63,610 bases of DNA from positions 66,556-130,165 of the forward strand of contig DF237000.1 of assembly GCA_000708835.1 (NCBI GenBank). The letters are read 5' to 3'. Under the pieces are notes generated by a model. It was given only the letters and a program-made list of their open reading frames with translations. It had not been told where the DNA came from and did no database searches. The stretch's first letter is position 1. The number at the start of each line of letters is the position of its first letter. This DNA is from Klebsormidium nitens (Eukaryota; Plantae; Klebsormidiophyceae). This document shows positions 44,895 to 56,559 of this stretch, one piece after another. Made by a program: the position numbers and the translations under genes.

Positions 44895-45779
44895 CCCTTT
44901 GACACATTTTAATGGTTTTCATCCAATATTAGATCCCCGGTATTATCAAAATCCTCTCCGAGGGAGTCACGTCAGAGGCGGGGTGAGATCCTCCCCAGGG
45001 AGTCTCGGAAGGGGCCCTCGCGCCACAACTTCACGTTGGAAGAAGACGACCAGAGCTTCATCATGAGTTCATGAGATTCAGACTGAGAAGGTCTGGTTGG
45101 CTAAAGCTCCAAGAAAATGGTCGAAGAGAAAGGAAAATGCATGAGGCTGGAGGGGGCACGCAGGAAAAGAGGCTGTGCAAGACATCCCTTGGTTTCTCAA
45201 ACCTGAAGATTGAAGTGCAAATAGGTATCTGTCAGGGATGCGGTCTCTTTGACTTCTAAGAGTGCGGCTTGCAGAAAGTCATCAATCTACACCGTCGCGC
45301 CCTTATCTGCTCTTCAGGGGGACGAGTCATTGAAGAGTTTGATTGTTGAGGTTTGGAAGAAGTCATACAAGAAGGGGGCGCCATGACTTTCAGGCACTTG
45401 CTTGTCAAAAGCAGACGTTGAATCTGTTGCAGGCGCCACCTTAAATGTAAATCATAGAGTAGGGGCCAGCAGAAGGGGTTCTTTATCTTGAAGGGGCGCA
45501 TTTACTCAGCACATGCAAACAAGACTCACACACCGTTTGATCTGTAGCACTGTGGAAGATCCGAGGGGTCGAACTGCGGTACTTTGAGTATCCCCTCAAC
45601 TTGGAGAGCACAGTCAATACATTGAACGAATAACATTTACAAAGCCGGTCAACCAGGGGTTCCCAAAGTTCAACACATTCTGCCCGTCCAAGAAACATGT
45701 GTAGTGCCTGCAAATGTGCGCTTTGAGCGTGCAGACGCTTGGAAGCCGTTGGAGTTAGGTAACTAGGGTGGGGGACAGA

Positions 45780-48412
45780 ATGGCCGTAAAGAGCGAGGCC
45801 CCTCGGCGGGTGCTCGTGGCCGTCAGCTCGTCGCGCAGCTCCAAAGATGCTCTGCTCTGGACATTGGACAAGCTCGTTCGGACGCCCGATGACATCCTGA
45901 TGCTGCTGCATGTGCTGAAGCCTATCGAGTACATCGCCACCCGAGGTGAGGAAGAGTTCGAGCCAAGCCCTTGTGACAAGCTTACAAAAGAATTGCAAGG
46001 AATGAAGGAACAACAGCTATGTTCAGGGACTGGCTGATGAGTAGGGAGATGACGGTAGAAAGTCAGTCCCCTTGTTTACCTTTTGTCATCTTGGAAACGT
46101 AAAGAACTGTGTATCTGAGCTCGTTTTGTTTGCGGGGCAGCGACCTTGACGTTGCTCATCAGTGGGGCATTTTAAACATGCCCCTTAGGTTGCTTATGGT
46201 TACTGCCCCCAAATACCGTGGGTAAACTTGGGTTCAAGGTCGCTGCTGTGGACAGGCAGAAATCTTGGCTAGGGCTACCTGTGGCGCGTTTGGCAGAGGC
46301 CCGTTGTTGCAATGCTGGGGGTTCTCGCTAAAACTGAGCAAGCGCGGAGTCGAGGCCCCTTTACAGTCAAGAGTTGGATATATGGACTGGTGCCATGGCT
46401 TCTGTGGTTACAGTAGGGTCACATGTGTGCTTCACTGAGCATCTTTCTTGACATGTTTATGGTGAAGTAGTGCATATACATGGCTCTGAAGTTATTGCTG
46501 GGAACTAGTGACTCCTAACTTTTAGGCGCTCTACTCAGCCTCCCCAGAGGTGGTTTTGCCCAGAGAACATGATCTGGACGTTTTGATAGCTCTTCTCTAG
46601 TACTCTTTATTTGGCAGCATTATACCTGTCCTTCGGTTGATCTGCCTTCTCTGCACTGCGGGCCATAGTGGCGTCATGGGGTGGGTAAAATTCAGTCAAA
46701 CCTTTGAAATGCACCCCCAGAGATCTGTGCTTTTGATTCATAGCATGGGATGCAGACATGGCCCCTGTAGAAGTTCCAGCGGTGCCCCTTCTCAGGGGGT
46801 AAAGTTATTCTCGGAGCTGTTCATTGGTCTGCAAATCTCACCCAGAAGATTCCTTTCAAAAGAGCTGTTCTCGAGGAACACAGAACTCGCTTTTACAAGC
46901 CTGCGCTGAGACGCATTGGTGCTTACTTTAAAGTACACCAGTAAACAGGCTCCGCTCTCCGCTCTCCAACCCAACGCCACCAGTCCCCTGGGGCAGTGAC
47001 CTATCTGAATGTAGCCCTGAATCGATGCAAATCGAGTAGGATTTTAGAAACACCTCGCGACCCCTCACCACAATTATTTATAACTCGTTCGTTGTCCACA
47101 GATGGCTACGTGGACGCGTCGCAAATGGACCCCGCCGAGGTGCAGAGGATCGGTCTGCAGGCGCGCGAGGTGGGGGGCGAGCTGCTGGAGTCTTTTGAGG
47201 CGCTGTGCGCCCCAAAACGGGTGAGTTTACCTTTTGAGAGTACCCCCTGTTTTTCTTTCAAGCGCTCAAGTGACTCTTGCTAGCTTGGAACAAGGTGAAT
47301 CCAATTCCTCCTCTATGAACGATTTCTATATTACATCACCCGGCAGCTTGGAACGTGCTTTTACCAAGCATTGTATCTAGGGCAGCTGAACTTGGTGCTC
47401 TCTGGACCATTGCTTTGGCTGCCTCTGTTTGATGACTTTCGTTGGGGCTGAGATATCAGTAGACAGTGAAGTGGTAACTTTGGTTGCAACCATAGGGCAC
47501 AAAGAGATACGATTTACTGCACGTTTTGTATCGTCTCGTTGTGGATCCAAAACTCGTTAGCCAACTTGCAAAGTGGTTGGTAGACAGTAAAAGTCTCCTC
47601 CTGCCAGGTGGAGGCGCTGACAAAGCTGGTGGAGGGGGACCGTCGCAAGATGATTCTGGAAGAGGTGCAACGCATGGGTGCGACGGACCTGGTCATGGGG
47701 GGCAAGGCGCGGCGCATCATGCCAAAGTAAGCACGTTGAGTCAGGACTGTCTGGGACTTAGCCAAGTGGCTGGAGTTGATCTGATCGGATTCGATATCTC
47801 CAGACAGTTGCATATGGCGGCGGAGATCTTTTGGGAGACTCGTAGCATGCTTCGGAAGTCCTCAGTTGTTAGTCAACAGACGACATTCAGAGGGCTTTGA
47901 GGTTTGGCGCGGCTGGATACACGCGTTGAAGACTTGTCTTTGCAACCCGGCCAAACACCTCTTAGATGAGCACGGTGATCCATTTGAACGATGTAGATGC
48001 TCCGAGCTTGGCAAGAGCGCTTTCTGCAAGCACGCCTTTCGCTTGCTGCATCTCGTCTTGGATACGACACTGTCTAGTCGTGAGCTTTCTGGACCTTGTT
48101 GGCGATTATTCCAATTTCACATGCTCTGTCATTACGAATGGGCGTCAGTCACTCTTGTATACGCGCAAAGGTGCGTGTAATGAGTCCGACTGTCAAACGC
48201 AGTCAAGTAGTTTTAGAATCTTTACCACTGCTGCGATTGTGGAGTCTGAACCCGGACGAACAAAAGAGCGCTTATTTTCCCTATTGAGATCAACCGAATA
48301 GGCACCGCTTATTACAAATTGCGCGTCTTCCTTTGTACAGGTTGAAGAGCACAAGCCTAGCTGACTACTGCCTGAAGCACGCCCGGTGCGCGGTGACGAT
48401 CATTCGCAAAGG
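45780..48412 (+). other. Universal stress protein (UspA-like) domain
   Basis: RRVLVAVSSSRSSKDALLWTLDKL...LLHV; VEGDRRKMILEEVQRMGATDLVMGG; TSLADYCLKHARCAVTII. Confidence 0.9.
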
Positions 48413-51400
48413 CCACGTGGTCCAATCAGCGCCCGCCAAGCCGGCTCTCCTGCCGTCTCCCTCAGGGACAAACTTCCCAACAGGCCTTGCTTCTGGAACG
48501 GCGGACGTTTTCACCGCCCCCCAGATGTCAAGGACAGCCCCGACAAGGCCCGCCAGCGACAAGCCCGTCCTCAGCGAATCAGATCGCGCCAGGTGGCGGA
48601 GCGCCGCTGACGCAGCGCCGGAGGAACCCGAGCCGGTTGGTGACGTCACGGGGATGGGCGTCAGGCAGCAGCAGACGATCCCGTGGGGTTCCGTGATTTC
48701 TGAGGGGGGTCAGAATGGCAGGGAGATCACCCCCGGGGACGAGGAGACGAGCTCGGATTACATGGCGCGGATGATCTTTAAGGCGAGAGCGGAGGAGCTG
48801 ACACTCGCGTTGGCAAAGCTGGAATCGGAAAACGATCCCAACGTATTCATAGCGGAAGAACCCGTCATTGAGAAACCGGTCGCCAGTGAGGACGTGGTCG
48901 CTGCCGAGCCAGAGCACGATTCTAAAAAGCCAGACGACGGTTCTAACGCCGATTCCGCTTCAGAAACGAAGGAAGAAACAGTCGAGTCGAATGCTGCATC
49001 GGCTGCAGGAGAGGCCGAAGCCAAAGGGGGCCACGTGGCCGAAGCTAAAGGGGAACACGTGGCAGCAGCTCCAATCACCGGGCAGGGGGACGAGAGTGCA
49101 GCGAAGGCGGGTGATTATGTGGCAGCTGAAGAGGGCGACAAGTCAGAGGGCGACAAATCAGCGGTGGCGGACAAGGAGGTTGATCCGAACAGTCTGTCGC
49201 TGGGCGATGCACACATTGGAGAAAACAAGGTGGGCCTTGACTTGAGACATGAATCCTGGTCGACCAACAGTGCTTGAAAATGATCAATCGGGCTGCTTCG
49301 TGTTTCTCAGGGAATACCGTGGCCGCTCATTCTGGGATCAAGGTGAAACCTTCGTGAGTCTCCAATCCATGGTTTGATTACTCGGCCGAGCGGGAAGGGC
49401 CCATTTTTTGTGAAGGAACCAATTGCGTAACATTTTCTCGCCAAGGCAATGGACTGCCAGTCTTGGCGCAATTGATTGGTTGATCTGCACTGCTTGGGTG
49501 TTTCAATAAACTGAAACTCTGCCCGCATGAGGTCCCAACCTTGTGTCGAATAGAAGTGGTCCGTCCTATGCGTAACATCTGGGGCACTTTCATGAGTGAA
49601 AAATATCTTCGGTTTTTTCGCCAAACCCCAGGAAGCTTGAAAGCAGTGAAGCCCATGATCCGTCCAGGATCCTAAAGCTAAAATCCTGATCCTTTTTTCA
49701 AAAAGCTGCCTCTGTCTTTCCAGCTCCACCTGCAACTCCACGTCGACAACCTCGACTCGGAGGCGTCGATCCGCGCGCACGAGGACAGCTTCGGCGATTT
49801 CAAGTCGCACAGCTCGCTCGACAACGACATCCTGAACATCATGGCCGTCGCCAAAGTCGAGGGCGTCGAGAAAGCGGGCGAAGTCAACGGGTTCATCCAG
49901 TATAAGCGCCCGGAAACCCCGGCATATGCGCGCGGGCTGGAGGTGTTGGAGGTCCTCGACCGGTGGCTCGTCGCGAAGCAGGCGGAGCAGTTGCGCCTCC
50001 AAACGGCGTCCGAAAGCGGGCGCAGCACGTCCGAAACCGTCCGAACGGAATCCGACGGTGGTGGGCGGAACGAAAACGGAAGCGTCCGCAGCGTGACGGA
50101 GGAAGATGTGCAGGAGTTGACGGGGCGAGAGGCGCCCGCGCGGTCCCCGCCCGAGAAGACCAAAAAGGGGGGCCGTTTCAGCAGGCTGTTCAGGGGGAGG
50201 GGGAAGAAGGAGAAGGGCGCCAAGGCGGCCAAGGCGGACGCGGTGGCGGGGGCGGCACCCGAGGCGCCAGCTGCCGCAGAGGATGACGTCACGATTTCGG
50301 TCAGCGAGGTCGACCGTGCCGTGGAGGAGTTCTGGGACGACTCTCCGCAGTCCGTGACGGTCACCGACGGCGGGCCCGACGAGCCGGGGCTCCTGAGCCG
50401 CATCGCTGACATCATCATCGCGGAGGAGGCGGAGAAGACGCGCCGGGGTGACGTCAGCAGGGCGAAAGACGTCAGCAAGGCAGATGCCAACGAGAAGAGC
50501 ACTCAGGGCCGTGGTGACGTGGCTTCCCGGAAGGATGACGTGGCGAAGCCCCGGCTGCTGCCGACGGAGGAGGGTACGGAGGATTCCGGGTCCGTGTGCG
50601 ACGAAATGGACCGCGGAGGGGATGACAACATGAAGCGCATGATGGAAGAAGACGAGAGCGTGTCCGGAAAACCCATCGTCGCAGCCCCGAAAGCCAAAGC
50701 CCCCGAACGGAAAGCCGCGGCTGTTGAGGCCCCGGCAGGTCCCGTTTTGAGGGCCCCGATCCCGGAGGGGCTTCCGCCGGCGGGGAGAGTCAAGGTGAAG
50801 GTGCAGATGCTCAACCGGGAAGCCCGGGGGGCTCCTCAGAGCGGACCTGTGAATGTGAAGACAGAAGCCCGGGGGGATCCCCCGACCGAGCGCGTCAGCG
50901 TGCGGATGCTGAACACAGAGGTGCGGGAAAGTGTGCCGACCGGTCGTGTCAGCGTGCAAATGCTCAACGCAGAGGCCCGGGGGGGTCCACCGGGGGAAGC
51001 GCTCGCACAGACTGGGGTGTCGAGACGCGTCTCCCGGGCTTTGTTGGAGGGCATGGTACCCGATATGCCGCGAGAGGACCCAGAGGAAGGGATGCCCAGG
51101 TGAGGATGCCACTTCTCAAAAAATGAGAGGCAACGTTTAGAAAAGGAACGGTTCAGCAGGTTTCTTGTGACTTGAATGATGTAGTGTTCATTAGTCTGCC
51201 CAAGGCGTAACAGGATCTTCTGCAAGGTAAGGACTGGCCAAGCCTTTTGCTCCTCACGCCTGGAAGGCTCATAGTAACAAAAGCCAGGGGCATCAGTTCG
51301 GTAATTCGGATCGCATATAATCTGGCATCGGAGACACGCTTGATTTTACGGTTTCGTGCTCCAAGACAAGATTTGCCTCAGCCGCATTCCTCTGTTACCA

Positions 51401-54400
51401 TCCAAGCGATTGAGGCGTCGTTGATTTTCCACTGTGTTTCTGGTCAGGGCTCCTTCATAAGCTAAGGGCAAGAGCTCGAAAAGGATTAACACGGGAGGGT
51501 TTCGGTCATGCCTCACGCATACACCTTGTAGGGAACGGCGCTCACATCACATTGGGATTTGCTTCCAAGCTTTCTTTTCTCCTTTCTCAGGCCCGAAGGC
51601 GCACCTGAAGGCCCCCCACCGGACGCTTCGGACGCGTACAAAGCGGAGCTGTCCAAATACACGCTGGAATCGTGGCTCGGGATTGGCCAGTGCGTGTCGC
51701 GTTTCCTCGAAGACGACCGCAGCAGCATCAGCAGCGAAGCGTACGACTCCGTTGGGGGATCCCTCGACACGGGGACCCCCGTCAGCCTCTCCTGGGACCC
51801 CGAACCCGCTGACGTGGCAGCTGTCCAGGGGGGACACGTGGCGGACGACTGGGGGTACGGCTCGAGCCGGCTCGGGGGTGGAGGGGAGAGACAGGAGAGT
51901 TCCGTTCCGTTCCGGTCCGTTCCGTCGCAGCCGGTTGCGGAGCCAAGGAAGGAATGGGTCAAGCAGGCTGTGAGGCAGTACGAGAACAAGGGGGAGGAGG
52001 AGAAAGCGTCCGGCGCGCGGCAGGCGGTTCCGGAGGTGCAGGGGCGGGTGTCGGATCTGGCGGAAGAACGAAATGCGAAGACGCAGGGGGGCCGGAAAAC
52101 GAGCGCAGGAGCAGAAGCGAAGAACGATGCAAGGTCAGCGAACTTAGGCACCCTGAATGAAAGTTCTTTCTGCAGTGACTTGTTTCGGCAGAGCTTTTGA
52201 TCGAAGTGTGAGTGCCCGGTCCGGGGCTTTCAAATGCGGGATTGCTTTTCAGCGATTGCGCTGCGGGAAGAGTTTTTCTCTGCTGCCGGAGTTCTGCATG
52301 TTGTTGGAACACCTCGAAGTCTTTGCAGGGAAGTTTGACCACGTTCTGAGCCTTTCCGAGAGTGGAAGTAAGCTCCCAATTCGTCGAATAAAATCTCGGG
52401 CAGCTTTTTCTGGTACTTTTGATTGAATTTAAAAATTGTTTGAGAGAGTCGTTTGTAGATTGATGGATGCACTTTCAATTCCGACTGCAGGCATGCTAGG
52501 GCGTGGAAGATATCTTACCCTTTCTGGGTTTCAAAGACTGTCCATTTCAGAACCTGGTTACACTGATCTCCTGGTTCTGCTTACTTTCTTTTCGCTGGCT
52601 GGTTTGGACGCTTCGAGTTACTCTGAACGCCGACGTTGTCTTTTCATGCTTCAATTACATCAGCACCATTGGCATGACTCTGCTCACAGGCTTGTTCACA
52701 AGTAAATAGTGCATGGTCTATCAAAATCGCTAAACCCGGCCGCGACCGGCCCTTTCGGACGCCCTTGAAACCACATTCGGACGTTCCCTGCAGGCGCGAC
52801 AGGGAGCTCCGGAGCCCCTTCTCTAGTTACTGGACCGCGGAGGCCACCACGTCAGCCCCCGACGACGTGTCCGCCCAGTCGAGCGCTCCCCGTTTCGGGG
52901 GGATCGCTCTGAACCCTGACCCGCGCCCGTCCACCCCCCCCGGCCAAGGAATCGCCCCCCTGCCGTCGAAGAGTCCGGATATCGCGCTTCCGAAACGACA
53001 GAAAGAAAAGAGGAGCAATGCTTACGATCCGCAGTGGGCGATTCCGGTGAAGAAAGAGAGTTCCGCGCAGTTGAGGCGGCATCCCAGCGAGACGGAGCTG
53101 TTTGAGGAAGAGGAGCAGGAAGGTGAGAGCTTGAAGCGATCTGAGTGGAGCGGATCTGTTGTGATTCTTTAAAAGGAGGAATATGGTGCAGATTCGCTTT
53201 GGTGTCTGGTGGTAATGACTACGGTTTGAGTTTGCACGTAAACCAATCCTTGAAGATTCCTCTGCAAAGGCAGCTGCCAGTCAATACTGCTGCCGAATCG
53301 TTCTCCGGACAAAATCTCCCATATCGTTTCCTTGAAAGCCAGTCCCTGTCCTCATTACCACGGCTCCCATTGTGCGAAAATCTGTCGTCGGTTCAGCTTT
53401 GTAGATCTTTGAGTGCTGAAGGTTTCAGCTCGCAAACGTGTTCTTCTTGATTATTCTCCTTGTCCATCGTCACCTCGATTCGTTTAAGTTCCCTCTGCCG
53501 CCTCCTGCAATGAATGACACTCCCCTTACATTTTTCATTAACCCAGCCGCTAACCTACCCTTGTTTATTCCGCAGACTTCCTGCCCCCCGCCTACCAGGA
53601 GGAGTCCACTTCGGCGGACCCCCTCTCAGCACTGAGTATCAGCCAGGCGATCACCGACTTGGCCGCGTCGACGTTTGCTGACCTCATCACCGACGGGCGC
53701 ATCTCGACGAGCCAAGTGGCGGCGTGGCGGGACGAGATTGCGTGGCTGACGTCACCCGGAGACCAGGTCATGGAGATGGTGGCGAGCACGGTGGAGACGC
53801 GGACGGGCAGCATGAAAGACGTGAGCATCGGGTTTGGTTCTCCCTTAACCCGGGGGTTGTTGCCCATTTTGGCGCTTGAAGATTTGAGCGCGGAGTGTGG
53901 ACTAAAACGTGACTATCCTTTTAGTATGGCTTGATTTCCCTTCTAGTATTGATTTCGGTAGCAAGTTGGGGACTCGCGGTGGGTTTAGGTTCTAGCTAGT
54001 GGCTGCTTCTGTCATGGATAGTCGGAACGAGCCGGCCATCTTTGAAAGCTCGTATGTTTTCTGGTCTTCGATTTGTGTCTGGCGCATGCTTCTCGCCCAT
54101 TGCTCGGACGTCGGAGCTTCGCTCCACCCGCCGCCCTCCTCGTAGAAAACACCTCCCTTGCTTCGGACACACGTGTCACTATCCCGGACGCTTTCCCTCT
54201 TCAGATCATCGTCCAACGGCTCCGTCCGGACGTCCAAACGCCCTACCTGCACTGTGCTCGATCGACGACCCGCTCCTGCGCATCGAACTTCTTCATTTCT
54301 ACTCTGATTTGAACGCGTATCTTATCTTTCGGACGCTTGGCCTCTCCAGATGTCGTCCAATGGCTCCATCCGGACGTCCAAATCTCCCTCCCCGCACTGC

Positions 54401-56559
54401 GCTCGCTCGACAACCTGCTCCAGCGCATCAAACTTCTTCGTTTCCAGCCTTTTCTCGAACGCGTATCCTTGACTTTCGGACGCTTTCTCCTCTCCAGATC
54501 ATCGTCCAACGCTCCGTCCAGACGTCCGGTCACGGCGCTTGCTCAACGAGTTGCTGCAGCAAACGAATCTTCTTTGCTTTCACTTTGTTGGGACGCATAT
54601 CTTACTTCCGCGGACGCTTCTTCTCTTCAGATCATCGTCCAACGGCTGCGTCCGGACGTCCAAACCTCCCTCCCCGCGCTGCGCTCGCTCGACGACCTGC
54701 TCCAGCGCATCGTGCTGCGGCTCAACTCGGGCGGCGCCGCGAGCAAGCGCGAGCTGATGGGCACGCGCGAGCAGACGGTGCAAGTGCTGAAAGCGGCCCT
54801 CATGATCAACGAGGAGGTCTTGCAAGAAATGGCGGTGCCCGCTGTTTACTGGGCGTCACTTCCAAAGGTGAGGGCTTGGACGTTCCAAAATCTGAGGCTT
54901 GTTAAGAGTTTGCAACTTTTGATCTACTCGGTTTTTGTCAGTTCACATTACTGCAACGGCCGGCAGACGGTTAACGAGTTTGAAGCGGCGCTGACGGTCA
55001 ACGAGTAAGTCCTGCAAGCCATGCTGGTGCCCGCTGTTTACTGAGCTTGATTATCGAAGGTAAGGGATTCAAGCTTTTAGCAGGAATTGCACCGGCAACG
55101 GCTAGCAGTCGGTGTCAATGCTCAGAACTGCGCTTTTAACTTCGCCGTGAATGAGGAGCTCGTTTTCTTGATGGCGGTGTCAGCCGTGGCTGGTCGTTGC
55201 TGCAACAGCTGAGGAACAGTTTTAGGGGTAGGGTTCAAGTCTTTTCACAACTTCAAGTTGGAGCAAGCGCGAGCAGATGATGCAGCTCGAAGCAGTCGTA
55301 TGTGGAAGAAAACAGCTTCTCAATGCTCAACCAAGCACTACTGAGGTTCCTTCCGACTTTCTCCTCGGTGGTTCGCTCGATTTCTAGGTATCTCGAAATC
55401 CTTAGATGCTCCGCAATCTTCCCTGCAGACCGTCAAGCAAGGTCGCTCGAAAGTTGCAAATTTGAAGCCTGAAACCTCAAAATCCTCTTCACAGACCATC
55501 ACGCAAGTCTGCTCTACAGTCAAAACCCTAAACCCCCAAACCCTAAACTCCTAAAACCTTTTTTGCAGACCATCAAGCAAGTGGTGGGCGGCGACATCTT
55601 CCAAGCGCTCACCAGCAAGTCCGCCAACCCCACGCAGCTCCTCCTCGCGGTTAACCCCAAAACCCCGCGCAACGCGTTCCGGGTTATCAATAATCTGGAG
55701 GCCGCGGTCCACATGTGGCACTCCATGATGGTCGAAATGGCGGAGCCGCTCGCAAAGAAGCGCGCGGTATACGCGAGCCGCGCGTCGGCGCTCGTGCATG
55801 ACCTCAAGATGACGTGGCCGGGCCTGGAGGCGACGGAGCTCGCCGAGTTCAAGATCACGCGCAACACGGTAAGATTCCGGTTCCGGTCTGTTTTGGTTCC
55901 GTCTCTTCCGTTCCGTTTCGATCCTTTCGTTCTGTGTCTGTGGGAATTTGTGCGTTCTGTGAAAGTATGTGCGCAAGCTCAAGATTACGTGGCCGTGCTT
56001 GGAGGGGACAGAGCTCGCGGAGTTCAGATTGCTGTAAGATTTCCGTTCCTGTTACCATTCGTTCCGTTCGAACCTGGACTAGATCCTGGCAGCTTCCAAA
56101 ATCTCGGACTCCGCTGGCCTCAAATGGTCTCAGAAGCGGCTTGCTCATTATTACCGTGCTGCTCTGTTGCAGGACATTGGACGAGCTATTCTGGAGAGTT
56201 ACTCGCGGGCGCTCATCAGCCTGTGCGGGAAGACTATAACCTGCCTCGACTACCTCCTGACCATGGACCCGCCCGAGAAATCCGCTAGGCGCTCCCGGTC
56301 CCGCCAAACGCCCGACCGCCAACCGTCGCCGTCGGAAAGCGTCAGCAAGTCTCTGACGAGCAGACCCTCCGGGGGAAGCGCTTCACGGCGCTCGATAGAC
56401 ATTTCAGCCCTTTCGCGAGCGGCGGAGTCGCCGCCCGAGAATCCGATGCGGCGGTCGGTAGAGGTGACGCCAAAAGCGGAGGGGGGGTCCGGGTCGCAAC
56501 AAGGTCGGGGCTGGAGGTTTTTCTCACGAAGAAAATCTCTATCTAAAGAATCAGCGTAA
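45780..56559 (+). CDS. Predicted USP-domain plus PRONE (RopGEF)-domain fusion protein, 11 exons, about 1,569 aa
   Basis: Exons 45780-45945, 47102-47220, 47608-47726, 48341-49229, 49724-51099, 51591-52133, 52794-53122, 53576-53820, 54631-54867, 55569-55868, 56173-56559. All are GT-AG and phase-matched, totalling 4,710 nt. The only doubtful join is 49229/49724. Confidence 0.7.
53576..56270 (+). other. Divergent PRONE (plant ROP nucleotide exchanger) domain
   Basis: ALSISQAITDLAAS, WRDEIAWLTS, DVQTSLPALRSLDDLL, QVLKAALMINEEVLQEMAVPAVYWASLPK, DLKMTWPGL and DIGRAILESYSRAL match RopGEF motifs in order (ALAISNAITNL, WRREMEWLL, LPALRKLD, QILKAAMAIN..LPK, RFPGL, DVGQAILESYSRVL). Confidence 0.88.
54180..54630 (+). 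repeat. Three decayed copies (~133-148 bp period) of the exon-9 acceptor and start
   Basis: cag|atcatcgtccaacgg-like junctions with AG at 54203, 54348 and 54496, before the true AG at 54629. Confidence 0.9.

Follow-up and report, generated by a model that had tools for sequence, protein, structure and literature searches.

All land plants rely on ROP GTPases to set the polarity of their cells, and one question is how RopGEFs were controlled before they were paired with receptor kinases. Universal stress protein (USP) domains, for their part, are fused to signaling modules in several known proteins, among them the USP-kinase and USP-kinase-U-box proteins of plants and bacterial KdpD. Land-plant RopGEFs, the guanine nucleotide exchange factors (GEFs) of ROP, carry a PRONE domain between short, variable, unstructured termini that have regulatory roles (PMC11194304). 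Here we describe a gene of the alga Klebsormidium nitens that bears on this question, KFL_000510180, in which a USP domain and a PRONE domain are joined through a very long linker. The gene occupies positions 45780-56559 of a 63,610-nucleotide stretch of contig DF237000.1 (positions 66,556 to 130,165 of the forward strand; assembly GCA_000708835.1), which we call the window and to which all coordinates refer.

The origin of RopGEFs has been placed at two different depths. An older study, the KARAPPO preprint, which included the K. nitens proteome, concluded that RopGEF-mediated ROP signaling arose after the charophycean algae (bioRxiv 10.1101/385682), whereas later work places PRONE much deeper, with a 2025 review recording PRONE-GEFs in Viridiplantae and red algae (PMC12445832). 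The "PRONE-like" proteins of non-land-plant Archaeplastida (Elias 2008; Mulvey and Dolan 2023; both as cited in PMC11194304 and PMC12445832) are like the present protein in being algal homologs of limited similarity to land-plant RopGEFs. As for the rest of the pathway, the ROP of Klebsormidium is functional and is reported to rescue a Marchantia rop mutant (PMC12445832), and K. nitens has RopGAP and REN homologs (PMC10625565).

We found that the two domains of KFL_000510180 lie in one reading frame, that spliced RNA joins them, and that the same arrangement recurs in related algae. We consider it likely that the locus as a whole gives one expressed, conserved USP-linker-PRONE protein in which the PRONE domain would activate ROP and the N-terminal arm would be regulatory or act as a scaffold.

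The USP and PRONE domains are encoded in a single spliced frame

When exons were assembled by script from the window sequence, eleven + strand exons between 45780 and 56559 gave a single 4,710-nt frame with one stop, encoding 1,569 amino acids. The ten introns between them are all of the GT..AG type and all phase-matched. This structure had been proposed in a first-pass annotation made from the sequence alone, and it was reproduced exactly at every coordinate. Exon-by-exon Pfam searches recognized a Usp domain in exon 1 and PRONE in each of exons 8, 9, 10, and 11. The exons, and the intron on which the fusion turns, are as follows.

Exon 1, 45780..45945, + strand: start codon and N-terminal part of the USP domain (Pfam Usp, 26.6 bits for the exon alone).
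Exon 2, 47102..47220, + strand: USP domain; 47220/47608 joint seen in four runs; kept in relatives L002, L004, and L005.
Exon 3, 47608..47726, + strand: USP domain, within which the degenerate ATP motif begins; 47726/48341 joint seen in four runs.
Exon 4, 48341..49229, + strand: end of the USP domain (to 48407), then the first part of the linker.
Intron 4, 49230..49723, + strand: 494 nt, with a stop at 49275-49277 and AATAAA at 49505.
Exon 5, 49724..51099, + strand: linker, with 39 conserved codons before its first ATG, a basic-hydrophobic motif at 50162-50215, and repeats at 50786-50956.
Exon 6, 51591..52133, + strand: linker, with a strongly conserved island of ~80 residues at 51637-51876; joints seen in four runs.
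Exon 7, 52794..53122, + strand: linker; 52133/52794 joint seen in four runs; kept in L002 and L004.
Exon 8, 53576..53820, + strand: N-terminal part of the PRONE domain from ~53623 (Pfam PRONE, 38.8 bits), aligning to chain 35-96 of AtRopGEF8.
Exon 9, 54631..54867, + strand: PRONE domain, with the site of the WW-loop deletion at 54703-54738 (residues 1287-1298) (Pfam, 54.6 bits).
Exon 10, 55569..55868, + strand: PRONE domain (Pfam, 39.6 bits), aligning to 2ntx chain 222-319.
Exon 11, 56173..56559, + strand: end of the PRONE domain (to 56271), an S/R/P-rich tail, a basic-hydrophobic end motif at 56509-56547, and the TAA stop at 56557-56559.

The start codon at 45780 has an in-frame stop 7 codons 5' of it. 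The join that matters most, between exons 4 and 5, runs from the donor AAG/gtgggc at 49229 to the acceptor tctttccag/CTC at 49724 and is in phase 0 on both sides. If it is left unspliced, the frame continues for 15 codons past the donor to the stop at 49275-49277 in intron 4. In exon 5, an in-frame ATG first occurs at 49841, 39 codons into the exon, and toward the 5' side the frame is closed at 49682 with no intervening ATG. The first-pass annotation had drawn attention to this phase 0 join and to the 39 open codons, and both were borne out here.

At every residue, the eleven-exon model equals GAQ80317.1, the 1,569-aa hypothetical protein of K. nitens (KFL_000510180), which confirms that the organism is a streptophyte alga, as had been supposed. 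The same protein (P0013) is UniRef100_A0A1Y1HUV1, "PRONE domain-containing protein," and was found in the cluster of P0002, a Trinity transcript fragment from Klebsormidium subtile. The fused model is therefore existing public annotation in GenBank and UniProt and, to that extent, is not the novel architecture for which it had been put forward as a candidate. It appears to have gone undiscussed all the same: in the searchable literature, no paper pairs "universal stress protein" with "PRONE domain" and none mentions the gene or protein identifiers.

Transcripts cross the join between the two halves of the gene

The sequence around intron 4 holds features that would suit a pair of neighboring genes, one encoding the USP part and terminating at 49275-49277, the other encoding the PRONE part and beginning at ATG 49841, the join being an artifact of annotation or of read-through. 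The stop lies only 15 codons into the intron, AATAAA follows it at 49505, and the methionine at 49841 is conserved. Public RNA data were examined for the region 47000-52999. Twenty runs from seven studies contain about half of the sampled words of this region, about half being the expectation for exons alone. Contigs from four runs (X1, X4, X7, and X11, one each from four studies) were aligned to the region, and introns 2, 3, 4, 5, and 6 were found to be skipped precisely at GT..AG in the contigs of all four. Because the skipping is so precise, these contigs must be assemblies of spliced RNA and not of DNA.

The 49229/49724 joint was present in each of the four runs, and the depth within intron 4 was zero at 49400-49599, the bin at 49200-49399 representing only the last 28 bases of the exon. 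At the other end of the USP domain, the loose-end consensus at 47100 matched the end of exon 1 in all four runs, so the joint between exons 1 and 2 was seen too. Two long contigs, of 6,068 nt (X4) and 6,057 nt (X7), start ~900 nt 5' of exon 2, cross exons 2 to 7, and extend ~1,905 nt beyond 52999. Their lengths fit an mRNA of ~6.07 kb made up of a 5' untranslated region (UTR) of ~745 nt, the 4,710-nt coding sequence, and a 3' UTR of ~613 nt. The joint between exons 10 and 11 was confirmed by the K. subtile fragment P0002. In place of transcripts ending after 49277 with no RNA across the junction, then, we found the joint in every run, in agreement with the first-pass annotation, which had favored one gene.

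The RNA data also bear on the idea that the fusion is accompanied, under some conditions, by separate USP-only and PRONE-only proteins made through retention of intron 4 or from an internal promoter. Retention of intron 4 would yield a USP protein of 446 aa, Met471 is conserved, and contigs can hide rare variants. However, no contig covering intron 4 was found in any of the four runs from the four studies, although weak retained-intron contigs were found for introns 2, 5, and 6. We give such isoforms little credence.

The implied 5' UTR (~45035-45779), if it is unspliced, contains 11 upstream ATGs with short upstream open reading frames, which hints at translational control.

The fused gene is conserved in related algae

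Exon 5 as a query brought up three relatives, at 73%, 44%, and 42% identity, and exon 4 brought up more. The relatives comprise L005 and L007-L009 from Logan, and L002/L003 and L004 from a JGI metagenome. On one strand, their contigs carry a Usp exon, open frames like exons 4 and 5, and, if they are long enough to include them, PRONE exons. With the 1,569-aa protein as a tblastn query, all eleven exons were colinear in L002 and L004, and a junction search found every splice position and phase to be the same in both; the resulting frames, 1,519 and 1,530 aa long, are intact (the exon 4 acceptor of L002 was placed through its L004 context rather than by the junction search). The "MA" at the start of exon 1 is kept in both loci. 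A weak 2.5-kb metagenome locus from an alignment scan with exon 8, L006, was set aside as not being a clear relative.

The relatives bear directly on the question of one gene or two. At the 3' end of exon 4, a conserved motif, KEVDPNSLSL, is followed by the intron 4 donor. The donor AAG/gtgggy and an acceptor ten codons before a conserved "DSEAS" are shared by the window, L005, L002, and L004, with the phase retained, and the sequence and position of the donor are kept in L007 as well. The tails that would be read through after the donor are, by contrast, unrelated to one another and run for 15, 43, 14, and 14 codons to a stop. At the protein level, the 39 codons that precede Met471 are conserved, and the differences between the window and L005 number 0, 2, and 10 at the first, second, and third codon positions, respectively; because of this bias toward the third position, they can be said to evolve as coding sequence. 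Intron 4 itself is only ~50% alignable to L005, compared with 75 to 89% identity in the adjoining exon ends. Together with the spliced joint in all four runs and the zero depth inside the intron, these findings make two adjacent genes extremely improbable. KFL_000510180 is almost certainly one protein-coding gene that places both domains in one expressed product.

In comparisons of the window with L002 and L004, in which synonymous sites are near saturation, the ratio of nonsynonymous to synonymous substitution (dN/dS) was 0.04 to 0.20 in the USP and PRONE exons (0.04 to 0.07 in exon 3, where amino acid identity is 90%) and 0.29 to 0.40 in exons 4 to 7 and 11. As judged from these comparisons, purifying selection is maintaining the fusion in related Klebsormidium-like algae.

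L002 and L004 are orthologous loci with ~95% protein identity from one metagenome (JGI sample 3300060284). They either belong to two closely related Klebsormidium-like strains or reflect a recent duplication.

Exon 10, searched against a library of 1.84 billion representatives, returned only fragments, the full protein sitting behind a cluster representative of 176 aa; one candidate from this search, P0004, proved to be a false match caused by PKD repeats. The PRONE region of P0013 had no match among long-protein representatives, a set confined to 863 to 2,746 aa and uninformative given that size range. In the ESM Atlas, exons 5 and 6 had no usable match, and the 30 best large clusters for the PRONE part all contained PRONE alone, with no Usp co-domain, which suggests, if only weakly, that the fusion is uncommon.

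The PRONE domain lacks the WW-loop

With the whole protein as the query, Pfam reported PRONE (PF03759) at 194.1 bits against a cut-off of 27, in two stretches, and the domain spans residues ~1197-1474. The PRONE part matched AtRopGEF8 (2ntx) with an E value of 3.3e-36, likewise in two colinear blocks (chain 35-124 and 174-352). In the first block, residues 1197-1286 align without a gap to chain 35-124, and this alignment takes in the region corresponding to the beta-arm, a beta-turn structure at chain 84-104 of 2ntx (PMC6767298). Between the blocks, the 49 residues of AtRopGEF8 chain 125-173 are replaced by 12 (residues 1287-1298; window 54703-54738), a net loss of 37. The same gap is found in L002 and L004. 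What is missing is the WW-loop, which is conserved in the PRONE domains of land plants and is 25 to 50 residues long in modeled rice and Arabidopsis RopGEFs (PMC7057574). The pairing of USP and PRONE domains reported by the first-pass annotation stands, with the reservation that the PRONE domain departs from the standard form.

Compared with land-plant RopGEFs such as AtRopGEF8 (2ntx/2nty) and Marchantia KARAPPO, the protein is alike in having a colinear PRONE domain, beta-arm region included, and in having an S/R/P-rich, disordered C-terminal tail of ~95 residues after PRONE, which resembles their regulatory tails and fits their pattern of short termini. It differs in that the WW-loop is deleted and the N-terminal PRONE helix has diverged, and it departs from the short-termini pattern at the N-terminal flank, which is 1,190 residues long and opens with a presumably folded USP domain. 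Unlike RopGEFs of land plants, it is not known to be linked to a receptor kinase.

These features raise the possibility that the fusion is real and that its PRONE-like domain is no exchange factor, serving instead as a scaffold that binds ROP or a partner, as a sequestering protein, or as a domain acting on another GTPase. The loss of a net 37 residues, WW motif included, is shared by the relatives, as would suit a domain that has given up catalysis, and exon 10, searched as a single sequence, brought up hardly any plant RopGEFs, a sign of strong divergence. On the other hand, the rest of the domain is gap free against AtRopGEF8 and, with 79 to 85% identity and a dN/dS of 0.14 to 0.20, is among the most tightly constrained parts of the gene. 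The alga also has a ROP and RopGAPs, which need an activator, and the WW-loop varies in length from 25 to 50 residues even among active land-plant RopGEFs (PMC7057574). We regard a PRONE domain without exchange activity as unlikely, but as an explanation to be taken seriously.

The USP domain carries a degenerate ATP motif

Pfam matched the N terminus of the whole protein to Usp (PF00582) at 55.3 bits against a cut-off of 24, with residues 9-157 covering positions 3-141 of the 141-position profile. The closest solved USP was Arabidopsis At3g01520 (2gm3; 2e-11). The domain is like the At3g01520-type plant USPs in matching the profile over its full length and in having the C-terminal block around "LVMGG ... 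CLKHARCAV," and it differs from them in that substitutions have removed two of the three glycines from its ATP motif. It differs from known USP fusions too, as its partner is a GEF and not a kinase or a transporter. G-x2-G-x9-G-[ST] is the ATP-binding signature of the MJ0577 class of USPs. The G-x2-G-x9-G-T of 2gm3 aligns here to G-x2-A-x9-T-S (residues 126-140; window 47698-48356), and this degenerate form is invariant in the relatives.

The first-pass annotation had envisaged a nucleotide-sensing input, and one could suppose that the USP head is a true sensor of adenine nucleotides (ATP, AMP, or cAMP) or of stress that gates the GEF directly. The domain is of full length and under strong constraint, and its closest solved relative, At3g01520, is a structure that we take to be AMP bound. 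However, the signature of nucleotide binding is broken in the same way in the relatives, and contact between the USP and PRONE domains, which stand ~1,000 residues apart, is unsupported. A direct nucleotide sensor is improbable, and that part of the first-pass annotation is not borne out by the motif. Since two of the three motif glycines are replaced, the USP head may, more tentatively, be mainly a dimerizing or partner-binding module and not a classical ATP binder.

A long acidic linker separates the two domains

Residues 160-1190 form a linker of 1,031 residues with a net charge of -58 and high proportions of A, E, S, G, and P. Pfam found no match above threshold in the linker exons. AlphaFold2 models of exons 6 and 5, built on alignments of only three to four sequences, had mean pLDDT confidence scores of 49 and 44, respectively, and showed, at low confidence, little more than some helices and a hairpin, located at the conserved islands; the model of exon 6 contained helices only. 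The linker is thus probably largely disordered, to judge from these predictions. Certain blocks are nevertheless invariant among the relatives: one that spans the join between exons 4 and 5, a helix at ~500-520, the basic-hydrophobic motif at 578-595, and an island of ~80 residues at 906-985.

Two basic-hydrophobic motifs are similar to each other and conserved, one in the linker (578-595; 50162-50215; GGRFSRLFRGRGKK type) and one at the C terminus (1554-1566; 56509-56547; WRFFSRRKSLSK type). They are candidate membrane-binding, calmodulin, or AGC-kinase sites.

The linker also contains a repeat, RV(K/S)V..ML..EAR (50786-50956), in three to four copies in K. nitens and one copy in L002 and L004; its copy number therefore varies between relatives.

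How the fusion might act in ROP signaling

For the activity of the protein, we lean toward a PRONE part that would bind the alga's ROP GTPase and exchange its nucleotide, probably as a dimer, or would at the least bind ROP. The long N-terminal arm could then serve in regulation, scaffolding, membrane targeting, and partner binding, doing for this protein what receptor kinases and short disordered termini do for land-plant RopGEFs, and the two basic-hydrophobic motifs might hold the protein at a membrane or be sites for a kinase or calmodulin.

Several points weigh against the reading of KFL_000510180 as a conserved ROP activator with a regulatory USP-linker arm. The WW-loop is reportedly important for activity, according to work by Thomas and colleagues in 2007; it is absent from this PRONE domain together with its WW motif, there being no WW in residues 1287-1298, and exchange activity may be altered or lost as a consequence. 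In the alignment to 2gm3, the USP domain does not show the ATP-binding motif G-x2-G-x9-G-[ST]. The RNA evidence consists of contigs built from short reads, which cannot prove that both ends of the message occur on single molecules and which drop rare isoforms, so that minor USP-only or PRONE-only transcripts could be missed. Finally, every relative that we found is close kin, that is, Klebsormidium-like.

A bolder proposal would have ROP activation in this alga proceed through this one PRONE protein lacking a WW-loop, with the USP head and arm coupling it to stress or energy state. It is a long shot, but if it were true, RopGEFs would have been controlled here independently of receptor kinases, in what was possibly an older mode that was later replaced in land plants.

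The best reading of the gene is as a lineage-specific domain fusion, a variant of RopGEF and not a new kind of system, and the finding has some relevance to how ROP signaling evolved. Where the two datings of RopGEF origin disagree, it supplies a concrete PRONE protein, expressed and conserved, in the earliest lineage with a true ROP, and one whose combination of a USP head, a very long arm, and a missing WW-loop is unusual. It bears on whether the WW-loop is needed for exchange, on what a USP domain does beside a GEF, and on whether a land-plant RopGEF could be replaced by such a protein.

Other features of the locus

Introns 8, 9, and 10 contain decayed direct copies of the adjoining exon edge and its splice site (54150-54711, 54771-55069, 55415-55582, and 55794-56026). 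The acceptor of exon 9 and the first ~80 nt of that exon have copies at ~54208 and ~54353 that are 61 to 92% identical to the reference copy, and a further, shorter copy of the same edge, 27 nt long, lies at 54485. There is one copy of the exon 9 donor end (75%), one of the exon 10 donor end (83%), and two of the exon 10 acceptor.

On the minus strand, a 601-aa open frame at 49307-51112 runs antisense to exon 5. This frame overlaps a G+C-rich coding exon whose product is rich in A, E, and G; codon composition, and not the presence of a gene, most likely explains it.

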